Source of the DNA: Macrostomum lignano
Lineage: Eukaryota
Reading direction: 5' to 3'
Assembly: GCA_002269645.1 (NCBI GenBank)
Contig: NIVC01000301.1
Location: 356,460-420,459 of the forward strand
DNA: 64,000 nucleotides
Shown one piece after another: positions 8,750-53,223 of the stretch (its first letter is position 1; each line of letters opens with the position of its first letter). The notes under the pieces are model-generated. The model was not told the DNA's origin. It saw only the letters and a list, made by a program, of their open reading frames with translations, and did no database searches. A program made the position numbers and the translations under genes.

Positions 8750-9360
8750 AAGTGACACTGCCACCTGACACTCATCTGACACTCACCTGACACTCTGACA
8801 CTCCTCATTTGACACTCATCTGACACTCATCTGACACTCATCTGACACTCGTCTGACACTCATCTGACACTCATCTGACACTCATCTGACACTCATCTGA
8901 CACTCTGACACTCCTCATCTGACACTCGTCTGACACTCATCTGACACTCATCTGACACTCGTCTGACACTCGTCTGACACTCATCTGACACTCATCTGAC
9001 ACTCATCTGACACTCTGACACTCCTCATCTGACACTCGTCTGACACTCATCTGACACTCGTCTGACACTCATCTGACACTCATCTGACACTCATCTGACA
9101 CTCTGACACTCCTCATCTGACACTCGTCTGACACTTATCTGACACTCATCTGACACTCATCTGACACTCATCTGACACTCCTCATCTAACACTTCTCACC
9201 TTACACTCATCTGACACTGACACTCGTCTGACACTCATCTGACACTCCTCATCTAACACTTCTCACCTTACACTCATCTGACACTGACACTCGTCTGACA
9301 CTCATCTGACACTCCTCATCTATCACTCCTCACCTGACACTCATCTAACTCGTCTGACAC
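8750..9360. repeat. 11-bp minisatellite (CTGACACTCAT), probably intronic
   Basis: Visible tandem array upstream of the first recovered hexosaminidase exon. Confidence 0.95.
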
Positions 9361-9528
9361 TTGGAATCAAAAGTGAATATTCGTACTGCTGGAATTGAAG
9401 CAAATGAAATTGAAGCGACCTGATTGGTATTGCGTGATTGACTGCATTTGCTCTCAATCCATCTGCTTGAGCTCCAGCATCGCACTAAGACCCCCAAAAA
9501 CCCAAACCAATCTGCACCACCCACGCAG

Positions 9529-12500: not shown

Positions 12501-15500
12501 CGCAGCCGCCGGCCTGCCGATGCTGGAGTACCACTTTGGCGGAGATGAGGCGCCCAATGGCACCTGGACTAACTCGCCTGCGTGTCGCCGCATGCTGAGC
12601 ATTCCGTGAGTCTGTTCACATGTTGAGGATTACAAATTAAATTTTTGAATCGGCCTTTAGATACACTAGCAGTCGCCATACAGACACACTGAGGATCGCC
12701 CTATAGACACAGTATCGCCCTATAGACAGACTGAGAATCGCCCTATAGACACACTCAGATTCGCCCTATAGACACTGAAAATCGCCCTATAGACACACTG
12801 AGGATCGCCCTATAGACACACTGAGAATCGCCCTATAAACAGACTGAGAATTGCCCTATAGACACACTGAGAATCGCCCTATAGACAGACTGAGAATTGC
12901 CCTATAGACACTGAGAATCGCCCTATAGACACACTCAGATTCGCCCTATAGACACACTGAGAATCGCCCTATAGACACACTGAGAATCGCCCTATAGACA
13001 CACTGAGAATCGCCCTATAAACAGACTGAGAATTGCCCTATAGACACACTGAGAATCGCCCTATAGACACACTCAGAATCGCCCTATAGACACACGGAGA
13101 ATCGCCCTATAGACACACTCAGAATTGCCCTATGGACACACGGAGAATCGCCCTATAGACACACTGAGAATCGCCCTATAGACACACTGAGAATCGCCCT
13201 ATAGACACACTGAGAATCGCCCTATAGACACACTGAGAATCGCCCTATAAACAGACTGAGAATTGCCCTATAGACACACTGAGAATCGCCCTATAGACAC
13301 ACTCAGAATCGTCTGTCGCCATATTTAGCAGCAGTGCTCAAATTTCTATACGAACCAGACTATCACAGCTGGTGATTCCCCACCTTCCAGGCCGGACCAG
13401 CCGGTGGACGCGGACGCGGTCAGTCGCGTCAACCTGCGCCGCCTGCTTGCCGAGGCCGCGGACGCCGGTGTTGACGCTCTACTGGGCTGGTCTGATGGCT
13501 TTGCTGGCGCGGATTTGCGACCGTTTAATCTGAGCAGCCTTGTAAGAGGATAGCCAGCCCCACGAAATCGGTACCCAGGCCAAGAAGAATAATTTTGAAG
13601 CGTTTAACTAGCCTACTGAGTTAGTAGAAAGTTAAGCGCCAGCATAACGATTCTTGGACGACTCTTAGGCGACTCTTACTTATTTCTCTGTGTACTCGTA
13701 GCTCTTCTTCGTCGCACTAGACGCGCTTGAGTCGCTAAAAAGTCACAGAAATCGCCATGTAACAAAACAAAATTTTTGTCTTCTGCAGGGGTCGGCAAAC
13801 ATGCGGCCCCCGAAGCCTCTCTATCCGGCCCTCGGGTTCTTTGAAACTTCACAATAGCAATCCCGCCTTCTCACGGTCTGTCTCTTCCGCGGTCTCTTCG
13901 TTTTGCGCGGCGCTCTTTATGTGCCAGCGGCCCAGGCTCGATTCCAAGTGCAGTCAAATTAATTCGTGGCTAAATTGAAATTTCAGCTTGGCTCTGCTCG
14001 TGCAGTTGACGCCCCTGAGGGCCAACCCCAAAGGCACAGTGAAGTGTACATGCCTAACGATAAAATAAAGTTAGGGCCGCTGTACACTCCAGTGTAAGTG
14101 TGTGTGCCTGCTCAGGGGAGTCAGCGGAATGGACAGTAATGCCTCACCCGGCTGTGTGACAATGTCGCTTAAAGTGCGCCAGGGTGCAGACCGTTTTTAC
14201 TACTTTTAGTAGTAGTGCTGCGCAAATTTCGCCCGCTATTCCAACCGACCAACCAACCAAACTCACAGACCGCCGGTATTCGCCGGCCGCGTAAAGTGGT
14301 GGCCGTGCCGTGGCACCTCAAGCCATCGCCGCGCGACCTTGCCGTTGCCGGCTACAGTCTGGTGATGGCGCCGGCCACGCGGCTGTACCTGGACCACCGG
14401 CAGGAGCCCGACCCCGAGGAGCGCGGTCTCTACTGGGCCGCCAATTTCACCGACTTGTACACCGTTTTCTCTTACGACGCCAAAACCGACGCCGCCGCGG
14501 CTGGTCCCGACGCTGACATTCTCGGCATCTCCGGTGCGCTCTGGACAGAGACGGCGCGCCAGCCGGCGCAGGCTTTTAGTCTGCTGGCGCCGCGCGTTCT
14601 GGCGCTAGCCGAGCGCGCCTGGCACCACGCCGACTGGGAGGGCGCGGCGTAAGTAGGGAAATAAGACGCTGGCCTCTGTACTCAAATAGAAGTGACTTCA
14701 AAACAGCTCCATAGGATTTCCTTCTGCAATAGTATCCCGTGAGGTCCGTAGGATCAACTTTGGTTAACTTATTACCTCTGGGGGGCAATATTATCAAAGT
14801 TTTAATGTGTGTCAGCTGCCCGTGACTTGGGAGAGCTAAAAAATACGTATTTTATATAGCAATGGATAAAATGAATAAAGACAGGTATTTGCCATAGACA
14901 GTAGATGTCGATTTTTGTCCCCTACCATATACGAGAGTGGGGACCAATGACTCGAAGGAATCGCAAACATGGGAACCTGAGGTTTAATACTTTTTTCTCG
15001 CTTTATAGAAGGGATTTCGCATCTCTACAGAAGTTTAAAAACGTCTGTAACCACTCTAGACAGTCGATACTACAATCAGCTTACTTGGCTAACGTTTTGG
15101 CTGCATAATTCGTACTTTATTATTCATTTTCAGCCCTACAGACGGCGGCCAGGCTGCCAAGGCGCGGAGCCGCGACTACGCCGAATTCGTCAGCAGCGTC
15201 GGCCACCGGGAGCTCGGCCGGCTGGCCAGCTTCGGAATTCAGTTCCGTCTGGCGCCGCCCGGTGCCCGCCGACTCGGCGGAGACAGCGGCGGCTTCCTGC
15301 TGACGCACGAGCTGCCCGGCGTGCGGCTGTTTTATTCGCTGGAGAGCGGCGCCACGCGCCGATGGGTCGAATCGGACAGACTGGTCGAGTGGCCGTCCGG
15401 TGTCCGACGAGTCCACCTCATGGCGGCGTGAGTTGCTAAGCTGTTTGTTGAATTTTAATTTTGCATTGCATTTTGATGCCAGCTTGTGTTGAACCCGGAA

Positions 15501-15999: not shown

Positions 16000-17726
16000 T
16001 CATTCCATCAGCTCGTCTTCGTCATGCACTGATGAATAAGATCCTTCCAGGCACTGGCTCCGAAATCGAGTCACCACAACAGCGCCGATGAGGCCCATTG
16101 TTAGCGCAGTTATCAGGGCGTACGCGCAGAAGAACAGCTTGTCAGCTGATGCCGCGACGGTGGCCCATTCGCTGCTAACAGGATTTTCTCCATTATTGTC
16201 TAAATCATTCTGCTGCTGATCTGCTGGATTAAGCTTTGTGGCCGTTTGCGATCCTTTTCTACTAATGAGCTGGTTGAGGAAGAGCGCGCGGATCAGCCGG
16301 TTGCTGACGCGAGCGCTGCTGTGCTGCTTGGAGTGGCAGTCGAGCACGAACGCGTTGCAGAGCACGTTCAGCATTGACATTATCACTGCGATGCCGAAGT
16401 ACCAGGCTGCAGCGGAGAGTAGGTCATGTGTTGAGGGATCTTATAGTATACTGTGCTAACTTAATCACGTGACTCACTAATGAGCGGCACGGACTCGCTC
16501 TGCGTAGGCGTGTAGTTGCTAGCCAGCTGCAGGAACACGCACATGGACAGCACGATGGTGATGCTGAAGGAGACTCGCTCGCCGCACTCGGGCGGCAGGC
16601 GGAAGGCGACGGCTGAGATAGCAAAGAGGAGGACGCTGGGGAAGAGCAAGTTTGTCACGTAAAACGCCGGCCGTCTCTGTAACGAAGTACTTTGCGCCTT
16701 GAAGTTCATAGAATTATGTTAAAGAAATGGATGTTTCTTACTTGAAACTTGATGAGGAACCGAATCTGATCTTGTCCAGCAATCACTTTTTGCTTTAGTT
16801 GAAGCTTTTGAACGCAGAATTCGTTGTTGGTCATCAGATAAGCCTCGATTGGAACTACGCCGGAAATTGGTTTAACATTTAGCATTATGGTGGTCCTAGA
16901 CTGCATTTGGGAATTTAACCACAGGCTGCATGTCTGACTGTCAAACGGAAACCAGAACATCTTCATACGGCATTTTAGGGTAACGACCAGCACAATTCCT
17001 TGATGAACTTCTCCGGTGCTTGTAATCAATACAGGCGACTTGTCCAAGTTGACATCTTTGATTTCAAGCCTGTGTTTAAATAGCACAATATTTACTGTCG
17101 CACGAGATTCGATTGCAAAATAGTGAAAATCCTTACACATTATTTGCTGTCGTGTCGGGCCGCCAAACCTGACTGGGAGTCAGAAAGATTCCGGCAATGT
17201 GGTCAAGTGAAGAGTTGAATCTTCCACGCCAGGAGAGCCTCGAGTCGAACCATTGCTGCAATTTTTATGTACCATACCTTGTACCAGCTATTTTTCAAAC
17301 TGAACTTAATGTAAAAAATATATAAAATATATAGCCTGGCGTGTAACGATCTATTTGTCCCGAGACAAAGAAGAATACCTTTGCAAGCCAGATCTGCAAC
17401 GTTACTTCCTGCGACGCCGAGTTCTAAAAAAATATTTTTCAGTCATTGCTGAAGTCACTGCTTTGATCAGTGCGCTACAATTTCGAAATCCATCCAAATA
17501 CTCGTAGTTACTGTATATAAGGCTTTACCACGTTGGCTAGGCTGAATAAGTAGATGTACAAGTTGAGAGTGTTGGCAGATCCATTGTCAGGCGGTGGCCG
17601 AACCGCGCTGTTATACTCTACATCGAGGTTCAGTGCCGCAACAACAGCAGCGTCAGGTGAACCGATGTCACTGGTTCTTGCGGCTGGAGCAGCGAACAGC
17701 AGAGCGCAAGCGATGATGAAGCACAT
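16000..17726 (-). CDS. Divergent nicotinic-type Cys-loop ligand-gated cation channel subunit, copy 1 (~431 aa)
   Basis: Exons 17726-17529, 17423-17379 (45 nt), 17255-17137 (119), 17069-16742 (328), 16676-16478 (199), 16406-16000. Signal peptide; YNSAVRP; WFDSRLSW; WRPD; Cys-loop CRMKMFWFPFDSQTC; M1-M4 with PPECGERVSFSITIVLS. Confidence 0.92.
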
Positions 17727-18213
17727 GTGTATACGATAGTCTGTTTCGCTTGAAAACCGTAAAATATCTAAAACAGGATCAGCCAGTGTGTTGTGGCTGA
17801 AGTATGCTACTGGTGCAGGGACGGTGCATGTGCCCAGATTAGCCGGCAGATTCTATTTATTCTCTGCTTACTTCCCACATTGTTTGCCAACCCAAACTTC
17901 ATTGACGCTTATTGTTTGCCCGATCCCTAGACTCTTCCGCAGTCACATGCAGCCATGATCCTCAAACAAAGCTTGTTAAGTCAATCAATCCAGTCTACCA
18001 CGGAAAATGAATATGATAGATTTGGTCGCTCATTCAGTCAATACGCTTGCAAAGGCAATAATTATCGTCATTCGTCCCTACGGATCAGGATACGGTTTTT
18101 TGTTATTCGGAGGTAACTATATTTTTTCCGTCTTTTAGAAGCCTGATTGGTGGTAAGCCCTGCTTGCCATGCCTCAACCTCAATTTCTGCCGGCTTAAGT
18201 CACTACCCTATCT

Positions 18214-18391
18214 CTAGCAACTACGCCAGCTACCGAATTTTTAATATTGACTGTGCCACATATACAGCTTAAAATTTCTGTAAAGCGACCTTAGTTAAGC
18301 GTGTGCCATTGCTTTTCGGTGACCTTGTCGTGACCTTGTAGACGTGGCATAGTCAATATAGTAGAAATTCGGTAGCTGGCGCGGTTGCCAG
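18214..18391. mobile_element. ~180-bp foldback/MITE-like element
   Basis: ~45-bp imperfect inverted arms: GCAACTACGCCAGCTACCGAATTT..ATATTGACTGTGCCAC versus GTGGCATAGTCAATAT..AAATTCGGTAGCTGGCGCGGTTGC. Confidence 0.65.
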
Positions 18392-19280
18392 GGCCCTGTC
18401 GGCTTGTCGATGTTTAAATCTACGGCCACATCTATGCTATACCCGAAAGAGACTGGGTGACCGCACAGATCCAAACACTAGATGTGTCAAATCAATATAA
18501 AAATGGTCACTTTTTTTGCATGCGTAAAAAACAGGTGTTCCAAAAAGACAAGTTATGAACAAAAACATGTTGAACAGCGGAGCATGATAACACCTCGTAC
18601 TGTTACAGAATTACAAATATTGGAAAAAATAATTAGGGAGAAGTTATTGAAACCACTTCAAAGAAGTATCGAGGTTTCAGTGTGCGCTTAGTGAAACTCT
18701 TTCTAGCTTTTTCGATCCACTGCGATTGCAGGGCTGTGCATCCTCCGCGTCTTAAGTCTGCACCGTACCAGTGTCGAGTCATGAATTCCAAGATGTGCTT
18801 GCATATTCAGCAAAGGGATTCAAGCTCGCAACAAACTGGCAGCATAGTCTGGGGCTGGGGGTGAAACAGTTCCGTGAAATAGACGTGCCGGCGTGGATGT
18901 TGGATTTCTGGGGCTGCAGATGAAGGCGAGTCGGCTGTTGTGACGGAAATGACCCGGCCGGCTCGTAAATGCACCTCATATCTGAAATATGGCTGCTGCA
19001 GTTTTCCAGTAATTTCTGTTATCGACCCATATTCTGCGTTGATCAGTGACAGACAAAATTTTATTAGCCTAGCGGACACAGTCTTGATGTGAAACCGACA
19101 TTCTGAGTGAAATTGAGCGAAAAAAGTGACCAACATTTTATACTGAGATGCCATCTGGTAGTACTTTTTGGATAGGCAGCGAGTGATACGCTCTGCTAAA
19201 ATAAACGAGTTATCTATACGTCTGGAACGGACAAACCAGTAAGAGGTAGGAAGTGAGCCAGGCCAACGATTTCCTATTTA

Positions 19281-20635
19281 CTCCGGCTGTCCGGAAAGTT
19301 GTGAGAATGTATTTAAAAAACCAGTCAGAACTATCAGAAAACACGATAACTGTACTAGTTGGTAATGTAATCTTTCCTTGCGTTGATTACAGCTTGGCAA
19401 TGGTCAACGAGTCGCTGAACCTCTCTTTTCAAGCAATCTTCGTCAAGGCCTCTTGCCTATTGCAACGCAGCTTCTCGAAATTGATTGTGGTCGCTGAACA
19501 CTCGCCTGGAGAAATCAGTCTTCATCCAACTGAATAAAAAAACGGTCGCAAAAATTGAAGTCTGGGCTGTAAGGACTCTGAAACACCAGCTGAACTCCAC
19601 GGGACTCCATGTACTGCTGCACAGAACGAACCACGTGAGGTCGCGCATTGTCCCACTGCCAAAGAACATCCGACAGATGAATTGGCCTTGACCTGAGAGT
19701 ACGCCATAGGTCTCCGGTGTGCCGAATGAACTCAACTATGCCATTTGCATCAACAGTTTGCTTTGGGGCTGTGGATTCAATGGAGAAGCGCTTGTTTGGA
19801 GTAAAAGCAACCAGAAGCATTGTCTTTGCATTGCCGACTGAGTGCCTGACAACCTGGGGCCGATGATCCCCTTGGCCAAGCCAGCACCTGTTGTTTTGCT
19901 TTGTGCCAGTGTTGTTCAGGTACACCCATGTCTCATCCTCCACCACGTACTTGTCGCAAAAGTTTTCCATGCCCTTTGTTGTAAAAAAGCCTGCGAATTT
20001 GCTTGGCACAATTGATGCGAGCAGTCTTGTTCTCCTCGGATAGAGCATGCGGAACCCAGACAGCAGAAACGTTTCGAAGGTGCAAATCCTCAGTCAAAAT
20101 TTCGTGCACTGTTGTTTTTCCAACTTCCAAAAAGTCAGCGAGGTCTCGGACACTAACTTTTGGATCCTCTTCAACAAGAGCTCGGCAGGTTTCGATCAGT
20201 TCCGTTGTCCTTGTTGACCGTGGCCGGCCAGTCCGAGGAGCTGAGACCGGGGAAATGCTTCGTCACAGAACTTCGAATACCATCTGTAAACCGTTGACTG
20301 ACCTGGTGCAGCATCTCCATAAACTTTGAGCAGCTCGTCATGACAGCTGAGAGTGGAGATTCCAAGACGGTATCTAGCATAGGCATGTAACCCTGGAAGT
20401 ATTCCATTGTGAAGAACTCGCTGTCAAAATTTTCAAGCTTGATCACCGCGTTGCATTTGCTATTGAGCACTTTATACTGAGCTCGCCCCTGCCCCCAATT
20501 TTGCTACTAGAGTAACAAGAATTTTCACCATAGACCTATATGAGTCTATTATTGAAAATTTCTGTGTGCCACGTCAACAGCTTGCTGCTTTCTTGCTTAA
20601 TTGACACATTCTCACGACTTTCCGGACAGCCGAAG
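19281..20635 (-). mobile_element. Full-length mariner (DD34D-type) transposon with frameshifted transposase
   Basis: 30-bp TIRs (CTCCGGCTGTCCGGAAAGTTGTGAGAATGT / revcomp CTTCGGCTGTCCGGAAAGTCGTGAGAATGT) flanked by TA at 19279-80 and 20636-37; 1355 bp long. Motifs WVPHAL, DETW, DNARPH and SPYSPDFNFCD are split across frames. Confidence 0.95.
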
Positions 20636-21156
20636 TAGTAGTTTCAGCTACTAAAGTTTCTTAAACTCTGCTTGTGAGTTTAGAGCTCAATGATAAGATA
20701 TAGATTAAAATCATAATTTTATTACTTCAAAATTAAAGCTCAAAAAGATTAAGCAGAAAAGCAAAAGGAACGAACTCTCGTTTAAAGACTTCGACAAGAC
20801 AAGATGATCTCTTTTTCGGGCAGCGGTTGCGCCGCTATCGAGTTTTCGAATCACAGCAGTAATGCACGCATCCACCTATTCGTTGGCTTGACAATTACGT
20901 CGTGCTCAAGTAAAACAAATGTTATGGATTGCTGTGCTAAATATAGTGGTGTTAATATTAAAAAATTGATAAGAAATGGATTCAGACTTGATGAAATAAG
21001 TATCTGCAGTAGCACATACCATGCCAGTACATGTCCCACCGTTACAACCAACAGCCTTAGTCAGACAAAAAATATATTGCTCTTTAAGTGTAAGTGAAAA
21101 TGATGAATATCACGGCGATCCAGTCTCACAGATCCATACACTCGTCGCTCGTGGGC

Positions 21157-23018
21157 TTAGGGCTTTGTCTTATTGCCTGGTCGGTCCAGAGTCTTCGCTG
21201 AAAAATCGCCTTCCAAGCATTCTGCACCAGATAAAGTGTCTACGGCGAAGAAGCAGATTAGAAAAATGGTTGAAATTGTGACCACAATGTATGTGGCGAA
21301 GAACACTTTATCGGCCGATGACACAACAGTGGCCCATTCGTTGCCATGGGGACTAGCCGGGTTTTCCGGCTCGTGGACATTGGACTGCTGATCTGTTTCA
21401 TTTGTTGGTGCCACCTTCATTGGTCTCCTAGCGACAAGCCGGTTGAGGAAGAGAACGCGGATCAGCCGGCTGCTGACGCGAGCGCTGCTGTGCTGCTTGG
21501 AGTGGCAGTCGAGCACGAATGCGTTGCAGAGAACGTTCAGCATGGTCGTCATCACTGCGATGCTAAAGTACCAGGCTGCAACGAAGTTATTACATTTGTA
21601 TAGGCCATTTTTGTTGAATTGATATAACTTATTTATCCAAAGAGACTCACAGATGAGCGGCATGGACTCGCTCTGCGTAGGTGTGTAGTTTCCAGCCAGC
21701 TGCAGGAACACGCACATGGACAGCACGATGGTGATGCTGAAGGAGACTCGCTCGCCGCACTCGGGCGGCAGGCGGAAGGCGAACACAGAGATGGAGAGGA
21801 GGAGGATGCTGGGGAAGAACAGGTTCGTCACGTAGAACGCGGGCTTTCTCTGAAAAGATTTATAGAAGTTTTGCTTTTCCGTGGAAAGTACGGGTTTATG
21901 CAAGTCGTGCGTACTTGATCGAGATTCTTCAGTGGGCTTGGTTGAGATTGACCAAGTCGTATGGCACGACACTGACTTTGTACCGGATGAGTGTTATAAA
22001 CTTGCCATTTTAAAGTGCTTTTTAATTACCGAAATTTACTTACTTGAAACTTTACAACAAACCGAGCCACGTCCTGCGTAAGCACCTCTTCTTTCTCCAT
22101 AAGCAATTCCTGAATGCAGAACTCATTATTCGGCATCAAATAGTCTTTCCTTGAGATGTCTTTGAAAATCGGAGTTACGTTAAGCATCAGCGTTCGCCTT
22201 TCTTGAATTTGTGATTTGAACTGCACTTCGCAACTCTGGCTGTCGAATGGGAACAGGAACATCTCCATCTGGCACTTGAAGGTGACGAGCTGCGCAATTC
22301 CTTGAGTAACGTCTCCTCTTTCCATAATCATGACAAGTGACTTTTCCAAATTGGCATCCTTGATATCGACTCTGTTGCAAAATGGTCAGATTTTACTATT
22401 TACTGTCCATCTGGATTTTGCGAAATTCCGTTGAAACTTACGCGTTACTGACTGAAACGTCCGGCTTCCAGACCTGACTTTGGTCCGCTAAGATTGTCGG
22501 AATGTCGCGAAATGTCGAGTTAAACTTTCCTTTCCATAAGAGCCGTGAGTCTAACCATCTCTGAGATTTGGAATGCAAGTCAGCATTGAATTTTATATCA
22601 AAGCGAAAGGTACTTTAATACGAAAAGAACACGCGAGCCCGGCTTTGAACCAACCTTTGCTAGGTAGAAATGCAGAGTCACCTCCTGAGAAGCCGAGTTC
22701 TGAAATCGATTGAATTAAGCAATTTTTCCTTTGCATACACATGTAATTGAAAACAGAAATATAAGAATACCTATTCGGCAAGCACAATCAGCTTACAACT
22801 TTCACAAGGTTGTACAAATAGACATATATGCTGACTGTGTTGGCAATATCATTGTCCGGCGGCGGTCGGACCCGGCTGTTGTACTCGGTGTCGATCTTCA
22901 ACGCTGACTGCACCAGGGCGTCCGGTGAGGGAGCAGCATCCTTTCTGGCTTCAATGAAGGATGCAGTTGCGATGAGGAGAGCGCAGACAATAAAGCCGCG
23001 GATTCCGGGAGAGTCCAT
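21157..23018 (-). CDS. Divergent nicotinic-type Cys-loop channel subunit, copy 2
   Basis: Exons 23018-22797, 22699-22655 (45), 22560-22442 (119), 22371-22044 (328), 21849-21651 (199), 21575-21157. Cys-loop CQMEMFLFPFDSQSC; M2 identical to the other copies. Confidence 0.92.
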
Positions 23019-23645
23019 CTCAGTAGTTTGCTTCTGAGAGTGAGTGACGAGTCTTCCTTTCCATCATCAAATGCATTTTTATCGTTTAATCGGTTGACGA
23101 ATAGCTTCATGGGAAATGAACCCATTTGTTTGCACTGTCATTGCCATATTTACTAATTTACCTAAGCTTTTTGATGGGTTTCAGGCTCCTGTTAGCCCCA
23201 CTGCAGAAGCTACTGGTTATCTGAGGCAAACTTTTATTGTTTGAATGCCAGTGAATATCGTTTTTGGCGAATCGGTTACTCAAATAAATGCATCGCTGAA
23301 TTTCAGTAATTCGGTCACATGGTGTTGAAGAAGTTTCTACAAGCCGGTATAGAATACTCATTTGCTCGTGAGCTGTCCAAACACTTGTCCTTCGTGAAAT
23401 GTAGTTATAGCCAAAACATAAATTCGTAGAATCGATCCATCAATCGTTTGACGGAGCCGCTTAGTAAATAAAGTCTATAAGTCTACGAGAAGCAAACATT
23501 TACTTGCAAAGTCGCAAATTGCTGTGGCGCCTAAGGGTCTGTGAGTCTGGACTCTGGTGAGTCTGCCTAATTAGTTAACCACTACTTCGCTCGTATTTAC
23601 CTAGACTTTAGCAGACTTCCTTAAATTTTGGCTTATTTGATTCAA

Positions 23646-24007
23646 TTTTTTTATTAGAGGCAGGGGGGTTGTGTGCACCCTGGCGCACTTTAAGTGACAT
23701 AGGCACACAACCGGCGAGAGGCATTACTGCCCATTCCGCCGACTCCCCTGAGCAGGCATACAAGCGCGCGGATACGTCCGCAGGCACACACTCACACAGG
23801 AGTGTACAACGGCCCTAACTTTATATTATCGTTAGGCATGTACACTTCACTGCGCCTTGGGGGGTTGGCTCTCAAGGCCGTTAATTGCACGAGCAGAGCC
23901 AAGCCGAGATTCCAATTCAGCCCCAAATTAATGTGACTGCACTTGGAATCGAGCCTGGGTCGCTGGCACACCAGGGCAGCTGCGCTACCGCTGGACTACG
24001 GCCCCCC
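23646..24007 (-). mobile_element. Full-length tRNA-derived SINE family B (~360 bp)
   Basis: On the minus strand it starts GGGGGGCCGTAGTCCAGCGG (A box), has GGCTCGATTCC (B box) and an A-rich tail. Flanked by a 12-bp near-duplication: TATTTGATTCAA (23634-45) and TAAATGATTCAA (24008-19). Second copy at 13920. Confidence 0.85.
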
Positions 24008-24723
24008 TAAATGATTCAAACGATGCGGCAAAAGAAAACACGTTTTATTCATGAGACACATCGACTATCAAGATAATAAAGAGGTCAACATAAGCACTGG
24101 AATGCAGCTCGAAGTTCAGCTCAGAAACGCAGAAATGCCAAGAACTTATCTAGGTCCCTCTGAGGGATTAATAGGATACACGTATAGTAATTGGATGCGT
24201 TGATTGTAAAAATGGGATTTTAACCCCAATTCAGGGCTCTAGAAAAAACTTAGATTTTCTTCTTTCTAATCTCTCCTCTCATCTCTTTCCTTTTCGGTCT
24301 CTTCTCTCGCCTATCTTTTCTCTCTCATATCTTCATTCTTCTCTCTACCCCATTCCCTCTTACATTTGTATTTTCTAAAATGGGGGTCTCGGCGTTGCTT
24401 GTTTGGCAAGCTTTCGAATATTAGATTCAAAGGTTTGCTTTCGGCTCAAAACCAGTGATTTGTAGAATTGCTATTGTACAATAGGATTCTCGGGTGTCAG
24501 TTTGGCAGAATCATTTGCCATTCGTACATTTACGAGTGAACCAAGTCATTTATTGACGGTGAGCATGCGCCGTAACTATCTGTCCAATAAAATCCAATAA
24601 ATAAACATTCGAAATGTTGCTCTTAAATATCAATTTTATCCACAAGAACAGTTTAACGCTGCGGTCAATCAAAGCAAAACCTCCTCAGTTCCCTCTTTGT
24701 AACTGTCCTGCACAGCATGTCAG

Positions 24724-26483
24724 TTAAAGCTCAGTTCCTTCCAGGCATTTAACGTTGGACACGCTGATCGCCAAGACGCAAATGCCAACAGTTGCAAGCA
24801 CCGGCACCAGTGAGAATGCGATGAAGAACACTTTGTCTGCCGATGTCACGACAGTGATCCACTCGTTTCCATGGCGACTAGCTGTGCCGTCTGTTTGACA
24901 GGCATCCGATTTTTGATCAGCCGCATCGGTTCCCGTAGCATCGTTTGGCCTGCTCTTCCCAGCGACAAGCCGGTTGAGGAAGAGAGCGCGGATCAGCCGG
25001 TTGCTGACACGAGCGCTGCATTGCTGCTTGGAGTGGCAGTCGAGCACGAACGCGTTGCAGAGCACGTTCAGCATGGTCGTCATCACTGCGATGCTGAAGT
25101 ACCAGGCTGCAACGCAAACTGGTGCATATTAGTAAGCAAGCAAATGAGTTGAAGTTGACACAGCGTCACGTCCATCGCGTGACTCACTGATGAGTGGCAC
25201 GGACTCGCTCTGTGCGGGGGTGTGGCTTCCGGCCAGCTGCAGGAACACGCACATGGACAGCACGATGGTGATGCTGAAGGAGACTCGCTCGCCGCACTCG
25301 GGCGGCAGGCGGAAGGCGAACACAGAGATGGAGAGAAGGAGGATGCTGGGGAAGAACAGGTTCGTCACGTAGAAGCTGTACTTTCTCTGAAATCAGCGTT
25401 TTTTTCTTCTGCGTTAATGGATTAATGCCTTTGCACCCAGTGAAAATGAAAATTCATCCTACCTGAAACTTTATTTGATAGCGCAGTGCATGCTGCAATT
25501 TTACAATGACCTCCCGTTTGATTTTTAACTCCTGAACGCAGAACTCGCTGTTTTTGGTTAAGAAATCTTCAGCCGATGCGTTTTCAAGTTCTGCTTTTAT
25601 ATCCAGTGTCATGGATGCCACGGTCTGCATTCGAGGATTGATTGAAAAACTGCAGCTCTGACTGTCGAATGGAAAAAATAGCATCTCCATTCGGCACTTG
25701 AAAGTGATGACCAGCTCCTTTCCGTGATACACTAAGCCGGTGTTTATGATCGATGCGGGTGAGTCGTCAGAGATTTCCTTTGACTCCAACCTGTTTTTTT
25801 AATCATGGAAAACCGATTGAAAGCTTTTACTAAGCAAGTAGGTGAAGAATTCCACCCTAGCATATAAACACGCAAGTCACTCACACTTTGGTCACTGTTG
25901 TAGCCGGTTTCCAAATCAGATTGGAATCAATTAAAATGCTATGAATTTGGTCGAACGTTGAATTGAATTTTCCAAGCCAAGACAGACGCGTATCAGTCCA
26001 AACCTGGAATATAGAACCGGAGGTAAACTATGATTTTTGACCTCGTAAGCAACCTTATTGTGATCGAGTTTAATGAAAAACTGTCTTTGGTACTCTTTCC
26101 AGCCAGAACTGAAGCGTCACTTCCTGAGACGCCGAATTCTGAAACAATAAATATTATTAAGATTGATATGGACTGCAAGTCGAATATTGAAGAACTGCAC
26201 GAGGTGCTTGTAGCTCAGAGAGTTTACAATTTGGAAGTGGGGCACTCACCACGCTGGCGAGGCTGAACAAGTGGACATACAAGTTGATGAGGTTGGCGGT
26301 TCCGTTGTCGGGCGGCGGGCGGACGGCTCTGTTGTACTCGGTGTCGAGTTTCAGCGCTGCCACCACGGCAGCGTCGGGTGAGGCAACATCCACGGCTTCT
26401 ACAACAGCGAGTAGGACCGCTCCGGTTGTGATGAGGCACCAGAGAGAGGGCATGATGGAGACTGGCCTCTGTGACATCTTCAC
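24724..26483 (-). CDS. Divergent nicotinic-type Cys-loop channel subunit, copy 3
   Basis: Exons ~26483-26250 (exact ATG uncertain), 26138-26094 (45), 26003-25885 (119), 25790-25463 (328), 25386-25188 (199), 25106-24724. Cys-loop CRMEMLFFPFDSQSC. Confidence 0.9.
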
Positions 26484-27959
26484 ATTATACGTGGCAACTA
26501 TTCCACTTTTTTGCTATTTTCTCCCCTGCTGCGCTTGCAAAAATAGTCTCGCTCGACTCTCTATCGCATGTTGTTTGCCAAGGCAAACTGGCGAATGATA
26601 GGAGAGATTTGCCTTTCTGCCTGTCTCAGAACTCAGACACGAGCTAATATTACATATATTGGGCTTTCTGGCAGTCAACCGGGAAGCCGTGTTGGTCAAC
26701 AGAATTCACCCTGTTCGCCACTAATTAATGTTTAAACTGCAAATCATCTGACCCAGGATATACCAGACTGATGGATTGGCTGTTTGCTGATCATTTTTGC
26801 TATCTGCTGGACAGTCAACACTTTTTATTTGGTGAAGCAAGTCATATTTTTGGGGCAATTGCAACTGCAGCGAAAAACTAGCTTATGTCGACTGAGAGCA
26901 GGAAATAAAAAATATAATATCCCGAAGCAGACTGTTGTCTAGCTGGGAGTCTCTCGCGGGCTTGGGGTTGTCTTCAGATGGGTCAGTCAGACCAATAGCA
27001 ATGAGTTAAACGTACGCAGACACAAAGCACTTAGAGAACACTGCAATCAGAAATTAGAAGCCTCGGAAACCTAGGACTCCTCCTTGACGGAAACAAGGGT
27101 AAGAGGTTCCATATTTATATCGCGGGATTCACCACTGCCCCATGCGCACAAGACCTCGTGACTTTGTTCTATTTTTAGAACTGACGTCACTTGGGGTCTC
27201 CGGGCAGAGTGCACTAGGCTGTGACTCGGTGTCTATTTTTAGAAACATGAACACTGCATGTGCTTAGAGAAGGGAAGGGCCTTAGGCACGTGATTCTCCC
27301 GTAAACACAGACCAGCGAGTGCAGTAAACATTTTTACTGCACTTTAGGACTCCAAGAAAACAAGATCTGTCATGTGACTTGCTCACAGGACAGGGAAAAC
27401 AGGCCAATAGCGTGACTTCAAGACTGGAACGAAACAAGAGCAGACCACAGCAGAGAAGCTTGTGGCTGCAAACAGGAGCGCAGAAAACGGGCAGAGAACG
27501 GGCAGAAAGCGGGAATGAGGCAGCAAACAGGCAGACAAAAGGGAAGACGGGAAGCTGACCAGCGGCAGACAGCAACCCAGGGCGAGGGCGAGGGTGAGGG
27601 AAACTGCTGACCAAGGGCGACGCTTAACACCAAACTTGCGGATCACTACACTAGATTAGCTCGTATAGCATCTGCAACTGCCAGAGGCTCGAGTAGGAAA
27701 GGTCTCCAACTGTGAGCTCGTACGACTGTAAATTGCGTTGAAAATAAAGTAAAAAACAACGGTCAGCTGATTTTAGAGATCAGGGCTACAAGAGTTATTA
27801 TTGCGAGACAGCGCGTCAACAAGGTAAACAAAGTTTTTGGATTCACTATTTAATCATTGGATTTGCTTAGTTTTTATGCAATATTCCATTTATCTTAACA
27901 TCCCGGTTCCATTCGAAGAAAATGTTTGGTTTGCGCGATTTTACGAGTCCTGAGTCAGC

Positions 27960-29979
27960 TCAGTCGTCGTTCAGCTCAGTTCCTTCCAGGCATTTAACGT
28001 GGGACACGCTGAACACAGTTGCAAGCACCGGCACCAGTGAGAATGCGATGATGAACACTTTGTCTGCCGATGTCACGACAGTGATCCACTCGTTTCCATG
28101 GCGACTGGCTGTGCTGTCCGTTTGACAGGCATCCGATTTTTGATCAGCCGCATCGGTTCCCGTAGCATCGTTTGGCCTGTTCTTCCCAGCGACAAGCCGG
28201 TTGAGGAAGAGAGCGCGGATCAGCCGGTTGCTGACACGAGCGCTGCATTGCTGCTTGGAGTGGCAGTCGAGCACGAACGCGTTGCAGAGCACGTTCAGCA
28301 TGGTCGTCATCACTGCGATGCTGAAGTACCAGGCTGCAACGCAAACTGGTGCATATTAGTAAGCAAGCAAATGAGTTGAAGTTGACACAGCGTCCCGTCC
28401 ATCGCGTGACTCACTAATGAGTGGCACGGACTCGCTCTGTGCGGGTGTGTGGCTTCCGGCCAGCTGCAGGAACACGCACATGGACAGCACGATGGTGATG
28501 CTGAAGGAGACTCGCTCGCCGCACTCGGGCGGCAGGCGGAAGGCGAACACAGAGATGGAGAGAAGGAGGATGCTGGGGAAGAACAGGTTCGTCACGTAGA
28601 AGCCCGGCTTTCTCTGAAATGGGTGTTTTAATCTGGTGGGTTGATCCAAAATAGATATTTTTTATGATTTGACCAAGATTTCACCGCTTGGATTTCACAA
28701 TCATTGGAAAGAGCGTTTTGCAATTTGTGAAGAAACCAAGGATTTAAATGTACTGAAATGATCTTGTTTTACCTAAATATTAGATTAGATTACGAGCGTA
28801 ATTAATTTAATTAGATTTCGGCATTTTAGAAATAAATAATTATTCGCAGGATTGTGGACATCCTGGCACAGCGCCATCGGCGATCGTCCCGCAACCAGAG
28901 CTGAGACGATTCTGCTCATTCCGCTGACTCAGCTGACCACATGCCAGCGTGCGCATACTGTACGCAGGCGCGCACTCAAACACGCACAGGGTCTCGAAAA
29001 ACCCAATTTTCAACAGGTTTTCTTTGTCTCAAAACCCACAAATAGAAATTCTAATATTTAGCAGAAGCAAAGAATCAAATACCTGAAAAGTCAGGCGGTA
29101 GCGCACCAAATGCTGACTGGAGACCGTCTTTCTTTTCATTGACAACTTCTGAATGCAGAACTCGCTGTTCTCTACTAAAAACATGTGTCGAGTAGAATTG
29201 ACAATCTCCGTATCAACATTCAGTACCATCGAGTCCGTCTGCTGCATTCGAGCACTGACCCAGAAGCCGCATCTCTGCCTGTCGAACGGGAAGAAGAACA
29301 TCGCCATCTGGCACTTGAATTTGACGATCATCTCCATCCCGTGATAGACCGCAAGAGTTGGGTCATCATGAGCCTATTTGAACTAAGATGATGTCAATCT
29401 TATTACCGAAAAATCTCACCTCCTTACTACTGCCGTTTCAGGTCGCCAAATTTGGTTGCCAGCAATGTAAATTCTTTTAATATTGCCGAACGATGAGTTA
29501 AACTTTCCTAACCAAGACAGTCGCGAGTCAGTCCAAATCTGGAAAATAAAAAAAATTGTCCTAAAAAATCTTTATGAGCAGACTTTCTCGTTTTATTACC
29601 CTTTCAAGCCAAAACTGCAGCGTCACTTCCTGAGAGGCCGAGTTCTGAAATATTATGATACGCTTTTGTCAATGACGGATCGAAAACATCGCAGATCGGG
29701 TCGAAAGACAAAACTTGCACTACAGGGACAAAAGAAACAACCTACCACGCTGACGAGGCTGAACAGATAGATGTACAAGTTGATGACATTGGCGGTTCCG
29801 TTGTCGGGCGGCGGTCGGACCGCACTGTTGTACTCGGTGTCAAGTTTCAGCGCTGCCACCACGGCAGCATCGGGCGAGGCAACATTCGCGGCTTCGGCAA
29901 CAGCGAGCATGACGCAACAAGCGGTGATGAAGCGTCCATAATAGGAAATAATCGGATGACGCGTCCGTGCGATTAACAT
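27960..29979 (-). CDS. Divergent nicotinic-type Cys-loop channel subunit, copy 4 (possibly disrupted)
   Basis: Exons 29979-29746, 29644-29600 (45), 29538-29420 (119), ~29373-29083 (291 instead of 328), 28613-28415 (199), 28333-27960. Cys-loop CQMAMFFFPFDRQRC. Exon 3/4 phase conflict and an 18-nt M4 deletion. Confidence 0.8.
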
Positions 29980-30995: not shown

Positions 30996-33363
30996 TTAGT
31001 TGGCCAGCCAAATGTCGCTGGTGCAGTCTCCGCCTGGGTAGCGCATCTCGTGCGCCAGGACCGGACCTTCGGGCTCGGCTCCGTAGTCCACCAAGAAGTT
31101 CTCGTCAATGGTCAGGCCGCCTTTCTCAGTGTCCACATTGATGCGGACCATCATGGTTCCGGACCTATGGATTTCAATGCATCAATGGGTTATCGACTCG
31201 GCTGAACAGATCTGAACCGATATGAAGTGGCCTTGACCTGATCTCAGCTGGACTGAGCTGGTCTGAACTGATCTGAACTGGTCTGAACTGGACTGAGCTG
31301 GTCTGAACTGGTCTGAACTGGACTGAGCTGGTCTGAACTGGACTGAGCTAGTCTGAACTGGTCTGAACTGGTCTGAACTGGTCTGAACTGATCTGAACTG
31401 GTCTGAGCTGGTCTGAACTGATATGAACTGGCCTTGAACTGATCTCAGCTGTTCTGAGCTGGTTTAAAATCTAAATCGTTCAGTCAGGATGAGTCTGACC
31501 TTGCACAGACCTGGTCTTTGGTCCCTTGGTCCAAAGTGGAGCAGGGCGGCCAGGCTTATCTAGCCTTATCTTATCAGTTATTATTCAAACCGAACCAAGG
31601 TGGTCTTCAGCGATTTTGCCTGACCTATTTTACTGCGCCTACCCTGGACCCGCTCTACAAATTAATCTACGTCACACGAGCTAAGTACGCACGAGTGACG
31701 CTTTCAAATGGAAATCTTCCGTTTGAGAGATAAGCTTGCTTCATACAGCTCAGTTTCGGGAAGTCGGGAACATTATTGTATGAGCTCATCAAAAAGTATC
31801 CAGAAGCTTCTATTCGCTTTATTCTACGACTAAGAGACGACTAAAAGATGTTGCGAGACTGCTTTTCACTCACTTCATCAGTTCCGGGTAGAACTGCTTG
31901 TCCCAAGCGGAAAACAGAGACGTGGTCACGTACAGTCGTCGACCGTCCAGGCTTAGCTGCAGCATCTGCGGCCCGCCAGCCACGCGGCGGCCTTTCACAA
32001 ACAGCCTCTTTGGCTGCTCGGTCAGCTCCGGGTCCTCGGTAACGCGTACGCCCTCGCCAGCCGCGATGCTACCGCCGAACCAGCACTGGCCAACCAGGCG
32101 GGGCTTGTGCGGATCGGTGATGTCGTACTGGCGCAAGTCTCCGTGAATCCAGTTGCTGATGTACAGGTAGCGGTCGTCAAGGGAGATAAGGATGTCGGTG
32201 ATCAGAGAAGGCATGTTAGGGAGAGCCCAGCCCTCAACTTTCTTGGGCGGCACGCTGATGACTCGCTCGGCCACCCACTTGTCGGAGCCCTCCGGCCGGT
32301 AGAAGTGGTGCACGGTGCCGCTCAGGGCACAGCCCACGAAGCCGTGGACGCTGGTCGGGTCGTGCAGGAAGCGAACTTCCAGCGGAATTTGGCCACCCTG
32401 GTCCGCCAGGTTGATCGTCTGCAGCCGCTTCCGGTTGCGCCAGTCCCAGAAGTGCAGGGAGCTGCCGTAGCCCCCGGCGTTGAGGTCATCCAGACTGAAG
32501 CCGCGCTTGAAGCAGCGCGGAGCGCCCCACTCGCTGCTCACCATGATGTTGTGCAGCGGCTGGTACCAGTAGTCGTAGCCAAACGGAGTCACATCCGACT
32601 CTGCCTGCCACGTTCCTTTAGTTTTGAAAGTCTTACCATCCAGCAGAACGAAGGCGCCCTTGCCTTCGCCCTTTGGATCGCCCATAGTACTGATCATGAT
32701 TTCCCCACTGGCCAGGCAGTGAGTCGTGTGAGGAGTCGCCAAGCCCAGCTTGTGCAATTCGGCCGGCTCAACCGCGCAGTGGACTTTCGGTGCTCTCTCG
32801 CAATCGCCGCCGACGTTCACAACGTAGATGCGGTCGCTTTTCAGGCAGGGCAAGATCATCTTGTCGCGCACGACACTGCAGTCGCCGTGGCAGCTGGAGC
32901 AGACGTTCCAGCCGGAATGGTGCAGCTCGTCGCCGTTGTGCGGCATGTAGCATCGGCCGATCACCGACGAAAAGGTCGGCGAGGCGTCGTCAACGTCGAC
33001 CACGCTGAGGTAGTCGGGCCGGTTGCCGTCGGGCACAATGCAGGTCACGTAGAGGAGCTTCTCGCGCGGTCCGGAGCGCATGGCCTCCAGAGGGCTGCTG
33101 TAGCCGGGACCCGAGCCGCCGCAGGCTGGCGAATGGGATTAGAAATTAAATTCTTTTTGGCAAGGTAATTTTGTGCCGACTGAGCGAACTTTGTCTAGGT
33201 TTGATATTCCCAGGTTTGTGATAAATCGCATTTTCACCGTCTTTGTACGTACAGAACCGGAACGATTGAATTGAGGACAGATTGAGGACAGATTCTGCAT
33301 ACAAAGTTACTCGTACGTATTTAAATGAAAACCAAACAAGAATGAAAGGTATTACTCACACAT
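30996..33363 (-). CDS. SELENBP1: Selenium-binding protein 1 / methanethiol oxidase
   Basis: Exons 33363-33360 (ATG T|GTGAGT), 33125-31874, 31164-30996. Motifs [95 protein letters not shown]. Confidence 0.96.
31245..31450. repeat. 10-bp repeat (CTGAACTGGT) in the SELENBP1 last intron
   Basis: Visible array. Confidence 0.9.
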
Positions 33364-35741
33364 GCTTTTGCAGTCTAGTCAAAATAATAACACAAAATTA
33401 TAGAAATACAGGGCAGAAGAGTTTTCTTCGTTTCTTTTCTTGGGTCGTTGCAGTCAAAGTAACCCTTGCGAGGCTCAGAACCAGCTTTATTTATATCCAA
33501 CCACTGAGACTCTTGACGCCCTGGGTGGCGTGGTTGAACAGCTTTACAATGACAGTCTTTATCTGTCAAATAATATGCAGCCCTGGGAATTCTGACCGCC
33601 ACCTCAGCTCTCACCACCCTGGCAGTGCAATGCAGTGTACATTTATTGTACTTTAACCCAGAAGATATCAAAACAAGTCTGTTAACAAACGACTTCGCTT
33701 GCAACTGCCCCGGCTTGCCACTCTTTTCACTGTGCGCCTCGCTTAGCACGCTGGCACCCGTCTAAACAGTGAATGGAGGGTGCGAGGATAGAGGCTCTAG
33801 TTCCAAGACTTCTTGCTCATTTCTCTTTGCAGACCAGCCAAGGACAACTTAAGTATAACGTAACTTCAGTTGTCCTTGAGACCAGCCTGAGCACTAACCC
33901 AACCCTGTACAGTCGGACTAGATCGCATTGCCTGGTTTAAACTACTTTCTAGATAGTAGTATCAAAAGAATTTATTGAATTTAGTCCACTTCTCTAAATA
34001 AAGAATGATACAAGTTAAAAATGTGAGTTATTGGCTCATGTCAAGGCTCATGGGGGGAATTTTTGAGATGTTAAGGCTCATGGGGGAATTGTTGAGATGT
34101 TAAGGCTTATGGGGGTAACTGAGATGCCGAGGGTCACTTAGAAGTTGTTGGTAGGCCAAGCATCAAAGAGAGAGTTAGGGTTTAGCCATGGCTTAAAGGA
34201 AGGCTTTGGTGCCAAAGTTCACAGGGGATGCTGGTATCTTAGGCTAGATATATATAGCTGGCTTTCAGGCCTGATGCTTTTTGGCTCTAACGACATTTTC
34301 CTTTAGGATACTAACAATAGCGATTGTACAAGTACAAAAACCTACATGCAGTTTTTTTACAAAAAATAGCTAGCCAAATGCTATGAATCAACATTTCTCC
34401 CTTAGAAAAAATAACGCATAGCTCTTGATGCGCAGAGTTTTGCTTCCCTTGGTTGGCTTGCTACAGAATTCCGCAATTTCGCAGCAGCAAATCAGCTGAA
34501 GAAAAAGCAGGAGCAGCTGCCGTGCTTGCATGTTTGGTGAAGTTGCGCAGTTTCCCATTTTGCTGTTGCGTCATCGCGCTTGCATGACCTGAAGAATTCC
34601 GCGTACAGAAAGTCTTGGGAAGGTCTTCCTACTTCACGATGCCTTTGCCAATGCTTTTGGCACGGACCCAACAAGGTTTCCGCTTTCAAAGCAATACAGC
34701 TATCAATTTCCCGACTGTCCCCCTTGACCCCGGCCTCTGTCACTCTACTGGTCCAAGGAAATCCATATCTGGTAGCTAGTTGGGGCTCTAGATCTCTATG
34801 ACTGGTCTAACGAACTGTTCAAACGAGAAAATCTTCAGATGCAAGCACAGATCCCGGAACTTCTATAGGGGGGGGGATAAATGCCATATGCAGACGCATC
34901 AACAGTCTACGCATTACTAGCTGTGTTTTCTCAGCGCATTCCCCTCCTGCAAAGCAGTGCCAATCGGTACAGCCATCCATTCCCCGTACCTGTAGCAGAG
35001 GAAACTGCCCCTCAGCTACAGGCCTCCATCCTCTCTCCCAGTTAACCCCCTCCTGCCTGCAGCGTACACAGATTGCTGCGTTAAGGCCTCTCCCAGCCCC
35101 TTCGGCCTGGCTACGCAACTGGGAGTCTCTCAATCGTCATTGGTGGCGCGTGGCTCTGGTGAGGCTGGCAATCGCTGCATCACTTGATTCCCCCTGCACC
35201 AATCTCCCCAACTGTCTCCCCTCTCTCCGTCTCGCCCAAACTCCGAACCCAATGAAGTTTTCGGTGTCGCCAAAGCTCCAACACGCGCAGACAGCCTGGC
35301 GGGCAGGCAGACATACAGGAGGCCCACCGGCAGCGAGGCGCAGGCCGATTCCAAGGGCGAACCAGGGGGGAGCTGGCCTGACAACTAAGAGAAAAAACTG
35401 AAGTAGGGGTGGCTCAGCCATGCCTGTGAGGCGCAGTCGCCCCCCTCTTCTACCCTGGTCCCTTCCTCTCCTGTGACATCTGCCTCCGACCCCCACTCTG
35501 TTGGAGGACAGTCCGCATGAACAAACTGTCACCAACGAAGACTCCGTCCTTTGCCCGGAGACAACCGTCAGTGACAGCCAGTAAGTTTGATATCTTTGAT
35601 GCTGCAATAGCTTCTGGTTGATTCGGAACTGAATTTGAGCTGCTCCGGAGTCAGAAACATTCCCTGACATCCGAGAGCTGCAGCAGTCAGCGCTGGGATG
35701 CAGCATTGGCTTTCTTATCGTCAGACATGTACGCGCGATCT

Positions 35742-36230
35742 CTAAGACATTTGCTCTAAGACATTTGGTCTAAGACATTTGCTCTAAGACATTTGCTCTA
35801 AGACATTTGCTCTAAGACATTTGCTCTAAGACATTTGCTCTAAGACATTTGCTCTAAGACATTTGCTCTAAGACATTTGCTCTAAGACATTTGCTCTAAG
35901 ACATTTGGTCTAAGACATTTGCTCTAAGACATTTGCTCTAAGACATTTGGTCTAAGACATTTGCTCTAAGACACTTGCTCTAAGACATTTGCTCTAAGAC
36001 ATTTGCTCTAAGACATTTGCTCTAAGACATTTGCTCTAAGACATTTGCTCTAAGACATTTGCTCTAAGACATTTGCTCTAAGACATTTGCTCTAAGACAT
36101 TTGCTCTAAGACATTTGCTCTAAGACATTTGCTCTAAGACATTTGCTCTAAGACATTTGCTCTAAGACATTTGCTCTAAGACATTTGCTCTAAGACATTT
36201 GCTCTAAGACATTTGCTCTAAGACATTTGG
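35742..36230. repeat. 14-bp minisatellite (CTAAGACATTTGCT), ~35 copies
   Basis: Highly homogeneous visible array. Confidence 0.97.

Positions 36231-37280: not shown

Positions 37281-40855
<3,575 letters not shown>

Positions 40856-45127: not shown

Positions 45128-53223
<8,096 letters not shown>

Follow-up and report, generated by a model that had tools for sequence, protein, structure and literature searches.

Four Cys-loop receptor genes lie in tandem on one strand

We analyzed a stretch of 64,000 nucleotides from the flatworm Macrostomum lignano (contig NIVC01000301.1 of assembly GCA_002269645.1, positions 356,460 to 420,459 of the forward strand), which is referred to here as the window and to which all coordinates refer. 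It contains a tandem array of 4 genes, c1 to c4, that encode pentameric ligand-gated ion channel (pLGIC) subunits of the Cys-loop type. An earlier note on this DNA, made from the sequence alone, had proposed 4 Cys-loop genes on the same strand. All the peptides quoted in it were located, every one on the minus strand, and the limits it gave for the array, 16000 and 29979, are exactly the stop codon of c1 and the ATG of c4. To build the gene models, we combined stop-free stretches with anchor peptides and with searches for exons of an exact length:

16000..17726, minus strand: gene c1, pLGIC subunit of 431 amino acids, GT-AG gene model; exons 17726-17529, 17423-17379, 17255-17137, 17069-16742, 16676-16478, and 16406-16000 (including the stop codon)
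21157..23018, minus strand: gene c2, pLGIC subunit of 443 amino acids, GT-AG gene model; exons 23018-22797, 22699-22655, 22560-22442, 22371-22044, 21849-21651, and 21575-21157
24724..26477, minus strand: gene c3, pLGIC subunit of 433 amino acids, GT-AG gene model; exons 26477-26250, 26138-26094, 26003-25885, 25790-25463, 25386-25188, and 25106-24724
27960..29979, minus strand: gene c4, pLGIC subunit of 417 amino acids (394 amino acids from the second ATG at 29910); exons 29979-29746, 29644-29600, 29538-29428 (111 nt), 29373-29083 (291 nt), 28613-28415, and 28333-27960

Each gene consists of 6 exons, all 20 introns (54 to 469 nt) start with GT and end with AG, and the reading frames are intact. 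The internal exons of c1, c2, and c3 measure 45, 119, 328, and 199 nt, the sizes given in the earlier note, and those of c4, which had been named as the exception, measure 45, 111, 291, and 199 nt. The c4 gene is in frame only with the 111-nt exon 3 (donor GTAAGG at 29427) joined to the 291-nt exon 4 (junction 29428/29373). The extracellular domain (ECD) of c4 is 15 residues shorter, and the deletion is located between loop A and β5/6. The peptide WRPETAVVR, which had been read as loop A of c4, is present in the DNA, but its last 2 codons fall inside an intron. Every protein has a hydrophobic, signal peptide-like N-terminus with an in-frame stop codon 5' of the ATG, and an AATAAA or ATTAAA signal occurs 35 to 434 nt past the stop codon (in c1, AATAAA at 35 nt). 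No fifth copy or fragment was detected by tblastn in the 64-kb window.

The proteins have a complete Cys-loop receptor architecture and a cation-type pore

The products of c1 to c4 matched the Pfam families PF02931 (Neur_chan_LBD) with 84 to 110 bits and PF02932 (Neur_chan_memb) with 73 to 83 bits, the cut-offs being 26 and 28, respectively (for c1, E = 1.4e-31 and E = 5.6e-23). They have a β-sandwich ECD, the M1 to M4 segments, and a conserved M2-M3 linker (SESVPLI), and all 4 contain the Cys-loop, with C-x13-C spacing and FPFD (pattern C[RQ]M.M..FPFD.Q.C). The M3-M4 loop is short (approximately 58 residues), and within it an MX-like helix, SARVSNRLIRALFLNRLV, is conserved.

The M2 stretch PPECGERVSFSITIVLSMCVFLQL is the same in the 4 proteins, also at the nucleotide level. 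Aligned to human α7, M2 (ECGERVSFSITIVLSMCVFLQL) presents Glu at -4' and -1', Arg at 0', Ser at 2', Thr at 6', Leu at 9', Val at 13', Gln at 16', and Asn or Ser at 20', and the anion-type Pro-Ala-Arg motif (-2' Pro/-1' Ala) is absent from this segment in all copies. By the -1' Glu, the 9' Leu, and the lack of the Pro-Ala-Arg motif, the pore is of the cation type, and the channels would be cation-selective. An identical cation-type M2 with these 2 residues in all 4 copies had been reported in the earlier note.

The product of the 45-nt exon is NSASQEVTLQFWLER, the β2 strand bearing loop D. A 45-nt β2 exon is typical of nicotinic acetylcholine receptor (nAChR) genes, and the relatives P0156, P0009b, and P0078, for which transcript-based or better models exist, have a 15-residue segment at the corresponding position. 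Throughout the M. lignano clade described below, with the distant P0156 and P0078 included, 2 additional cysteines are conserved, one in β9 and one shortly after M4. They are a candidate family-specific disulfide that may tie the C-terminal tail to the ECD. Their motifs, shared by c1 to c4 and located here in c3, are:

approximately 25545-25528, minus strand: β9 Cys motif, NxEFC[VI]Q
approximately 24744-24733, minus strand: post-M4 Cys motif, C[LI]EG

The acetylcholine site is lost in all 4 copies

The positions of the ligand pocket were read by alignment to a canonical α-type nAChR (P0004) and to human β2 and α7. The reference motifs of P0004 are WRPDLVLYN (loop A), GSWTYNG (loop B), and YGCCSDPYPD (loop C). 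The residues found at these positions were:

Loop A, canonical Tyr: Asn in c1, Ser in c2, Thr in c3, deleted (gap) in c4
Loop B, canonical Trp: Gln in c1, Gln in c2, Arg in c3, Arg in c4
Loop C, canonical Tyr-x-Cys-Cys and second Tyr: loop 5 to 6 residues shorter in c1 to c4, with none of these residues
Loop D, canonical Trp of the complementary face: Trp in c1, Tyr in c2, Trp in c3, Trp in c4

With loops A, B, and C aligned, the aromatic box for acetylcholine (ACh) is thus lost in each copy except for the loop D aromatic residue, as the earlier note had claimed. Considered as evidence of membership in the nAChRs, the principal face of the box is missing and the aromatic residue of the complementary face is kept; considered as evidence of membership in the serotonin (5-HT) receptors of the 5-HT3 type, the loop B Trp is likewise absent from c1 to c4. 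Because the cation-π Trp of loop B, the Tyr of loop A, and the Tyr and Cys-Cys of loop C are all gone and loop C is truncated, ACh and 5-HT appear unlikely to act on these proteins as classical-site agonists.

The ligand-binding half has diverged while the channel half has been homogenized

Rates of nonsynonymous (dN) and synonymous (dS) substitution were compared between the copies, domain by domain:

ECD: dN 0.26-0.43; dS 0.9-2.4 (saturated); dN/dS 0.13-0.29
M1-M3: dN 0.02-0.11; dS 0.04-0.33; dN/dS 0.16-0.44

The dN/dS ratio was below 1 in every domain. According to the earlier note, the ratio should be elevated in the ECD, with the transmembrane domain (TMD) under purifying selection. This expectation was not borne out, the values being 0.13-0.29, rough because dS is saturated, in the ECD and 0.16-0.44 in M1-M3. 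The contrast between both halves lies mainly in dS, which indicates that the channel half has been homogenized at the nucleotide level. A “conserved TMD, divergent ECD” pattern should therefore not be taken for a signature of selection unless dS is checked. Homogenization is most evident in an 88-nt block (AFRLPPECGERVSFSITIVLSMCVFLQL) that runs from the end of M1 through M2 and is the same in the 4 genes:

16522..16609, minus strand: 88-nt block, c1 copy
21695..21782, minus strand: 88-nt block, c2 copy
25232..25319, minus strand: 88-nt block, c3 copy
28459..28546, minus strand: 88-nt block, c4 copy

The block comprises 28 codons and approximately 22 synonymous sites, and no difference was found in the 6 pairwise comparisons. 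From M1 through the MX helix, 85% to 100% of the codons for a shared amino acid are identical per pair, versus 40% to 55% in the ECD. M2 is invariant in distant paralogues too, which indicates that constraint at the protein level acts on it as well. The identity of M2 thus has 2 sources, constraint on the protein and, in part, nucleotide homogenization, as the lack of synonymous differences over 88 nt shows.

Between c3 and c4, the DNA of exon 5, intron 5, and exon 6 is 97% to 99% identical, versus 67% to 71% in ECD exons 3 and 4, and the 3' half of this pair is a clear gene-conversion tract. Contiguous gene conversion as the sole cause in all copies was rejected because intron 5 is conserved between c3 and c4 only; the identity of the other pairs reflects either short, exon-limited conversion tracts or constraint on synonymous sites. 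GC content at third codon positions (GC3) is 85% to 95% in the homogenized part, 40% to 60% in the ECD, and 77% to 81% in neighboring genes, a pattern compatible with GC-biased conversion. Codon bias alone was considered for the synonymous identity and set aside, since a GC3 of approximately 80% would not yield 90% to 100% identical codons, although this argument is not decisive. An RNA editing-type duplex involving the 88-nt block was also discarded: no reverse-complement match to it of 10 nt or more is present within approximately 1 to 1.4 kb on either side in any of the 4 genes.

Variability across the family is highest in loops B, C, and F (2.1 to 2.2 bits), followed by loops E (1.8 bits) and A (1.6 bits), the Cys-loop (approximately 1 bit, 0.96), and M2 (0.2 bits, 0.22). 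The pocket loops have a dN of 0.47-0.86 and a dN/dS of 0.2-0.4, and the scaffold a dN/dS of 0.09-0.23, all with saturated dS. Positive selection on the pocket loops was not seen at the resolution of pairwise dN/dS with dS saturated, and these loops appear to be faster-evolving yet constrained. The array probably stems from a tandem duplication, judged to be old because ECD dS is saturated, after which the channel half would have been kept uniform, partly by gene conversion. With an old, divergent ECD joined to a channel half homogenized down to its synonymous sites, the locus clearly illustrates concerted evolution that is domain-specific within a receptor family.

The genes belong to a clade made up of M. 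lignano sequences only

A HMMER profile of 3 M. lignano paralogues was run on 1.84 billion representative proteins. The close relatives that it retrieved are all from M. lignano (P0001-3, P0008-10, and P0282), as are the more distant members P0012/P0156 and P0078. At least 12 further M. lignano channel units exist beside c1 to c4, which makes at least 16 paralogues in all, and several models join 2 to 4 channel units, indicating further tandem arrays in this species. All core members have the near-invariant M2, lack the loop B Trp, and have a short loop C without Cys-Cys. The distant member P0078 keeps the loop B Trp (FGSW), and the loss of this residue thus arose within the M. lignano lineage. 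After these, the best-scoring proteins are nAChR-like sequences of a generic kind from Lophotrochozoa and 5-HT3A-like sequences from vertebrates, at approximately 1.6 to 1.8 substitutions per site and 25% to 28% identity.

The public models of P0001, P0002, P0008, P0009, P0010, and P0282 (UniProt A0A1I8...) are defective: most of them omit the 45-nt microexon that encodes loop D, and in several, 2 to 4 adjacent channel genes or unrelated domains such as a C-type lectin have been merged into one protein. Family size and residue states drawn from these models would be misleading. A word-index search was incomplete, overlooking P0008-P0010, which were recovered by the full HMMER scan; for this reason, the lack of near-identical matches in it was not taken as evidence of no expression.

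A neighbor-joining (NJ) tree was built from 128 taxa with 500 bootstraps, with no anion-channel outgroup, no maximum-likelihood run, and cephalopod chemotactile receptors (CRs) not placed. In this tree, a clade of M. lignano sequences only was recovered in 98.6% of the bootstraps and the core family in 93%, in line with the independent, lineage-specific expansion put forward in the earlier note. The point-estimate tree places this clade next to the 5-HT3A-like group. However, 5-HT3A-like sequences predominated in the nearest outgroup in 28% of the bootstraps and something else did in 71%, and the exact split of M. lignano plus 5-HT3-like sequences was recovered in 6%. Among solved structures, c3 is closest to nAChR β2/β4 and 5-HT3A (E approximately 1e-34), with the following scores in the Protein Data Bank (PDB):

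Full length: β2 122.3 bits; 5-HT3A 119.6 bits
ECD alone: β2 60.6 bits; 5-HT3A 53.8 bits
TMD alone: α7 62 bits; 5-HT3A 57 bits

Octopus CRT1 and the Alvinella receptor Alpo4 were not among the best 60 PDB matches. As to the term “nicotinic-derived” used in the earlier note, the nAChRs lead 5-HT3A by only 5 to 7 bits per domain and the bootstraps leave the nearest outgroup divided; “nicotinic-like” is a fair label, and derivation from nAChRs is unproven. We conclude that these sequences form a deep clade, specific to this lineage, within the cationic nAChR/5-HT3-type branch. Its origin is judged to be independent of that of the cephalopod CRs, because the clade holds M. lignano sequences only.

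The structural matches could also be understood if c1 to c4 were accessory subunits that lack a principal binding face and co-assemble with canonical ACh-binding α subunits. Non-α nAChR subunits (β2, β4, γ, and δ) are the top ECD matches in the PDB, and the only box residue that is kept, the loop D aromatic, belongs to the complementary face. However, classical non-α subunits retain the loop B Trp and the loop A Tyr, as β2 does in our alignment, and both are lost here. Moreover, M1-M3 and MX are near-invariant and the family's own, unlike those of canonical nAChRs, which suggests self-assembly, and at least 16 paralogues are many for an accessory role. We regard this role as quite improbable.

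Proposed function

With moderate confidence, we propose that c1 to c4 encode non-cholinergic, non-serotonergic, orphan-ligand subunits of cation-type pentameric channels that are gated through interfaces built from variable loops. The subunits would form homo- or heteropentamers, probably within the family, an assumption made because the pore and M1-M3 are near-invariant across the paralogues. A ligand would bind between subunits, where loops A, B, C, E, and F, the family's most variable yet still constrained parts, form the interface; the Cys-loop and M2-M3 coupling, which are conserved, would relay the binding and open the cation pore. Ligand specificity probably differs among the paralogues.

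Several points weigh against this proposal. The missing pocket residues could equally mark a vestigial site, c4 might fold abnormally with its 15-residue ECD deletion, the roughness of the ECD dN/dS values limits what can be drawn from them, and whether the channels are homo- or heteromeric is a guess. In addition, the GenBank record read for positions 20996-43363 of the window (377455-399822 of NIVC01000301.1, GCA_002269645.1, 100% identical; c1 lies outside) annotates only 2 genes and contains no gene call for c2, c3, or c4. By exact look-up in a collection of 15 billion proteins, none of the 4 proteins nor 2 alternative-start versions were found. Because of the missing calls for c2 to c4 and the lack of an identical protein, expression of these genes may be very low, restricted, or absent. 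The GenBank annotation was built from RNA-seq transcript assemblies and filtered for repeats (PMC5730564). An innexin open reading frame (ORF) of 340 amino acids, at 39833-40855 on the plus strand (Pfam E = 4.9e-55), likewise has no GenBank gene call. This indicates that the public annotation of the contig is sparse and that the missing calls for c2 to c4 are weak evidence.

The missing gene calls and protein matches would also be expected if the array consisted of silent or decaying duplicates whose frames were kept chiefly by conversion from active paralogues, which would repair the channel half. The codon usage of the ECD is also atypical, with a GC3 below that of the neighboring genes, c4 carries its deletion, and homogenization of the 3' half is demonstrable. 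Nevertheless, the 4 frames, the splice sites of 20 introns, and the signal peptides are all intact despite saturated ECD dS, and the dN/dS ratios of the ECD and its scaffold are low. Because neutral decay over such divergence would have brought stop codons or frameshifts, decay is disfavored, and we hold it to be very improbable.

If c1 to c4 are instead ligand-gated, as we propose, their ligands could be sensory. In such a role, the proteins would be the flatworm counterpart of the cephalopod CRs, acting in peripheral sensory cells, with paralogues tuned differently to environmental, prey, or mate cues. The array matches the CR pattern in being tandem, having lost the ACh residues, and combining a conserved pore with variable pocket loops (CRs: PMC11526382). 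A lineage-specific origin suits a chemosensory role, and absence from an annotation based on whole-animal transcripts fits expression in few cells. Against it, no sign of diversifying selection is apparent in the pocket loops with dS saturated, and the same pattern is found in the nAChR-like expansions of bivalves and annelids, which a published study links instead to development, immunity, and stress (PMC6896357). Besides, Alpo4 is still an orphan (PMC10338036), and the missing annotation says little, since the nearby innexin ORF is uncalled as well. On balance, the chemosensory role suggested in the earlier note is an analogy with the octopus CRs, and we consider it rather improbable. The wider scenario, in which Macrostomum turned a transmitter-type Cys-loop channel into a family of receptors for environmental or conspecific chemicals, convergently with cephalopods, with gene conversion keeping the pores uniform while the loops diversify, is speculative and appears quite doubtful to us.

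Other features of the window

A relic of a Tc1/mariner-type transposase lies between c1 and c2. It is degenerate, with its helix-turn-helix (HTH) and DDE parts in different frames and both Pfam matches below the gathering thresholds. This relic and the remaining coding features are:

19518-20262, minus strand: Tc1/mariner-type transposase relic (HTH 20262-19936, DDE 20093-19518)
31873-33081 and 30999-31181, minus strand: gene for a selenium-binding protein/methanethiol oxidase, matching M. lignano BOX15_Mlig014905g2 at 100% identity, with a 10-nt tandem repeat in 26 copies inside its intron (31202-31463)
9528-11993, plus strand: GH20 hexosaminidase (CHB_HEX and Glyco_hydro_20 exons)
51523-52419, minus strand: MORN-repeat protein
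61028-61654, minus strand: HNOB (haem-NO-binding) domain, typical of soluble guanylate cyclase
41688-43430, minus strand: ORF of 580 amino acids with no Pfam match and no exact match in the protein collection, part of an annotated 608-amino-acid gene

Mini- and microsatellite arrays are very dense (for example, a 13-mer in 119 copies and a 28-mer in 75 copies) and account for marked local skews in GC/AT and for numerous long ORFs that are spurious. They are located at:

31-438, 8765-9349, 10936-11361, 12647-13311, 35740-36229, and 38118-38749
44390-44843, 45439-46229, 47529-48436, 49231-49659, 56095-57642, and 58266-60390

Comparison with known receptor families

With vertebrate nAChRs, c1 to c4 share the Cys-loop, FPFD, the -1' Glu and 9' Leu of the pore, the SxSVPLI linker, and the 45-nt β2 exon. 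However, identity is approximately 25% to 28%, the M3-M4 loop is much shorter, the β9 and post-M4 cysteines are specific to the family, and the Trp of loop B and the Tyr of loop A, kept even by non-α subunits, are absent. Similarity to 5-HT3A is nearly equal, as the full-length scores indicate, and the GERVSF at the start of M2 resembles 5-HT3A. The loop B Trp is missing as well from some 5-HT3A-like fish proteins, for example P0006. Grouping of the M. lignano clade with the 5-HT3A-like expansions of teleosts and amphibians ranged from 6% (exact split) to 28% (relaxed) of the bootstraps.

Alpo4 and the nAChR-like genes of bivalves and annelids resemble c1 to c4 in being lineage-specific, often tandem, divergent, and orphan (PMC6896357, PMC10338036). 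The aromatic cage is intact in Alpo4 (F103, W159, Y199, Y205, and W65; PMC10338036), but in the core family of M. lignano the residues of loops A, B, and C are gone. In bivalves, the expansions consist largely of retrocopies with few introns (PMC6896357), whereas c1 to c4 keep 5 introns and the 45-nt microexon.

The closest parallel is with the cephalopod CRs (octopus CRT1), which similarly lack the ACh residues, have a conserved channel and variable loops, and are tandem and lineage-specific (PMC11526382). The M. lignano sequences differ in forming a clade of their own, in a tree that does not include the CRs; in a loop C that is truncated rather than remodeled; and in that no diversifying selection was detected in pairwise dN/dS with dS saturated. 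Sensory expression and hydrophobic ligands are traits of the CRs and would be hypothetical in the M. lignano family.

Surveys of nAChR expansions in Lophotrochozoa left out flatworms (PMC6896357), and one flatworm survey of ligand-gated ion channels lumps the cationic M. lignano sequences as nAChR-like. The suggestion in the earlier note that the family is undescribed is supported, since the literature searched contains no description of it for flatworms and c2 to c4 have no gene call in the record read. The kind of family is already known, from the tandem, lineage-specific, nAChR-like orphan subunits of Lophotrochozoa and from the cephalopod CRs; the M. lignano family itself is new to the literature searched. 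Because M. lignano is transparent, transgenic, and amenable to RNA interference, it offers a practical system in which to study the function of orphan Cys-loop channels. Lineage-specific expansions of nAChR-like subunits that lack the ACh site are on record for molluscs and annelids; those of cephalopods evolved into chemoreceptors.

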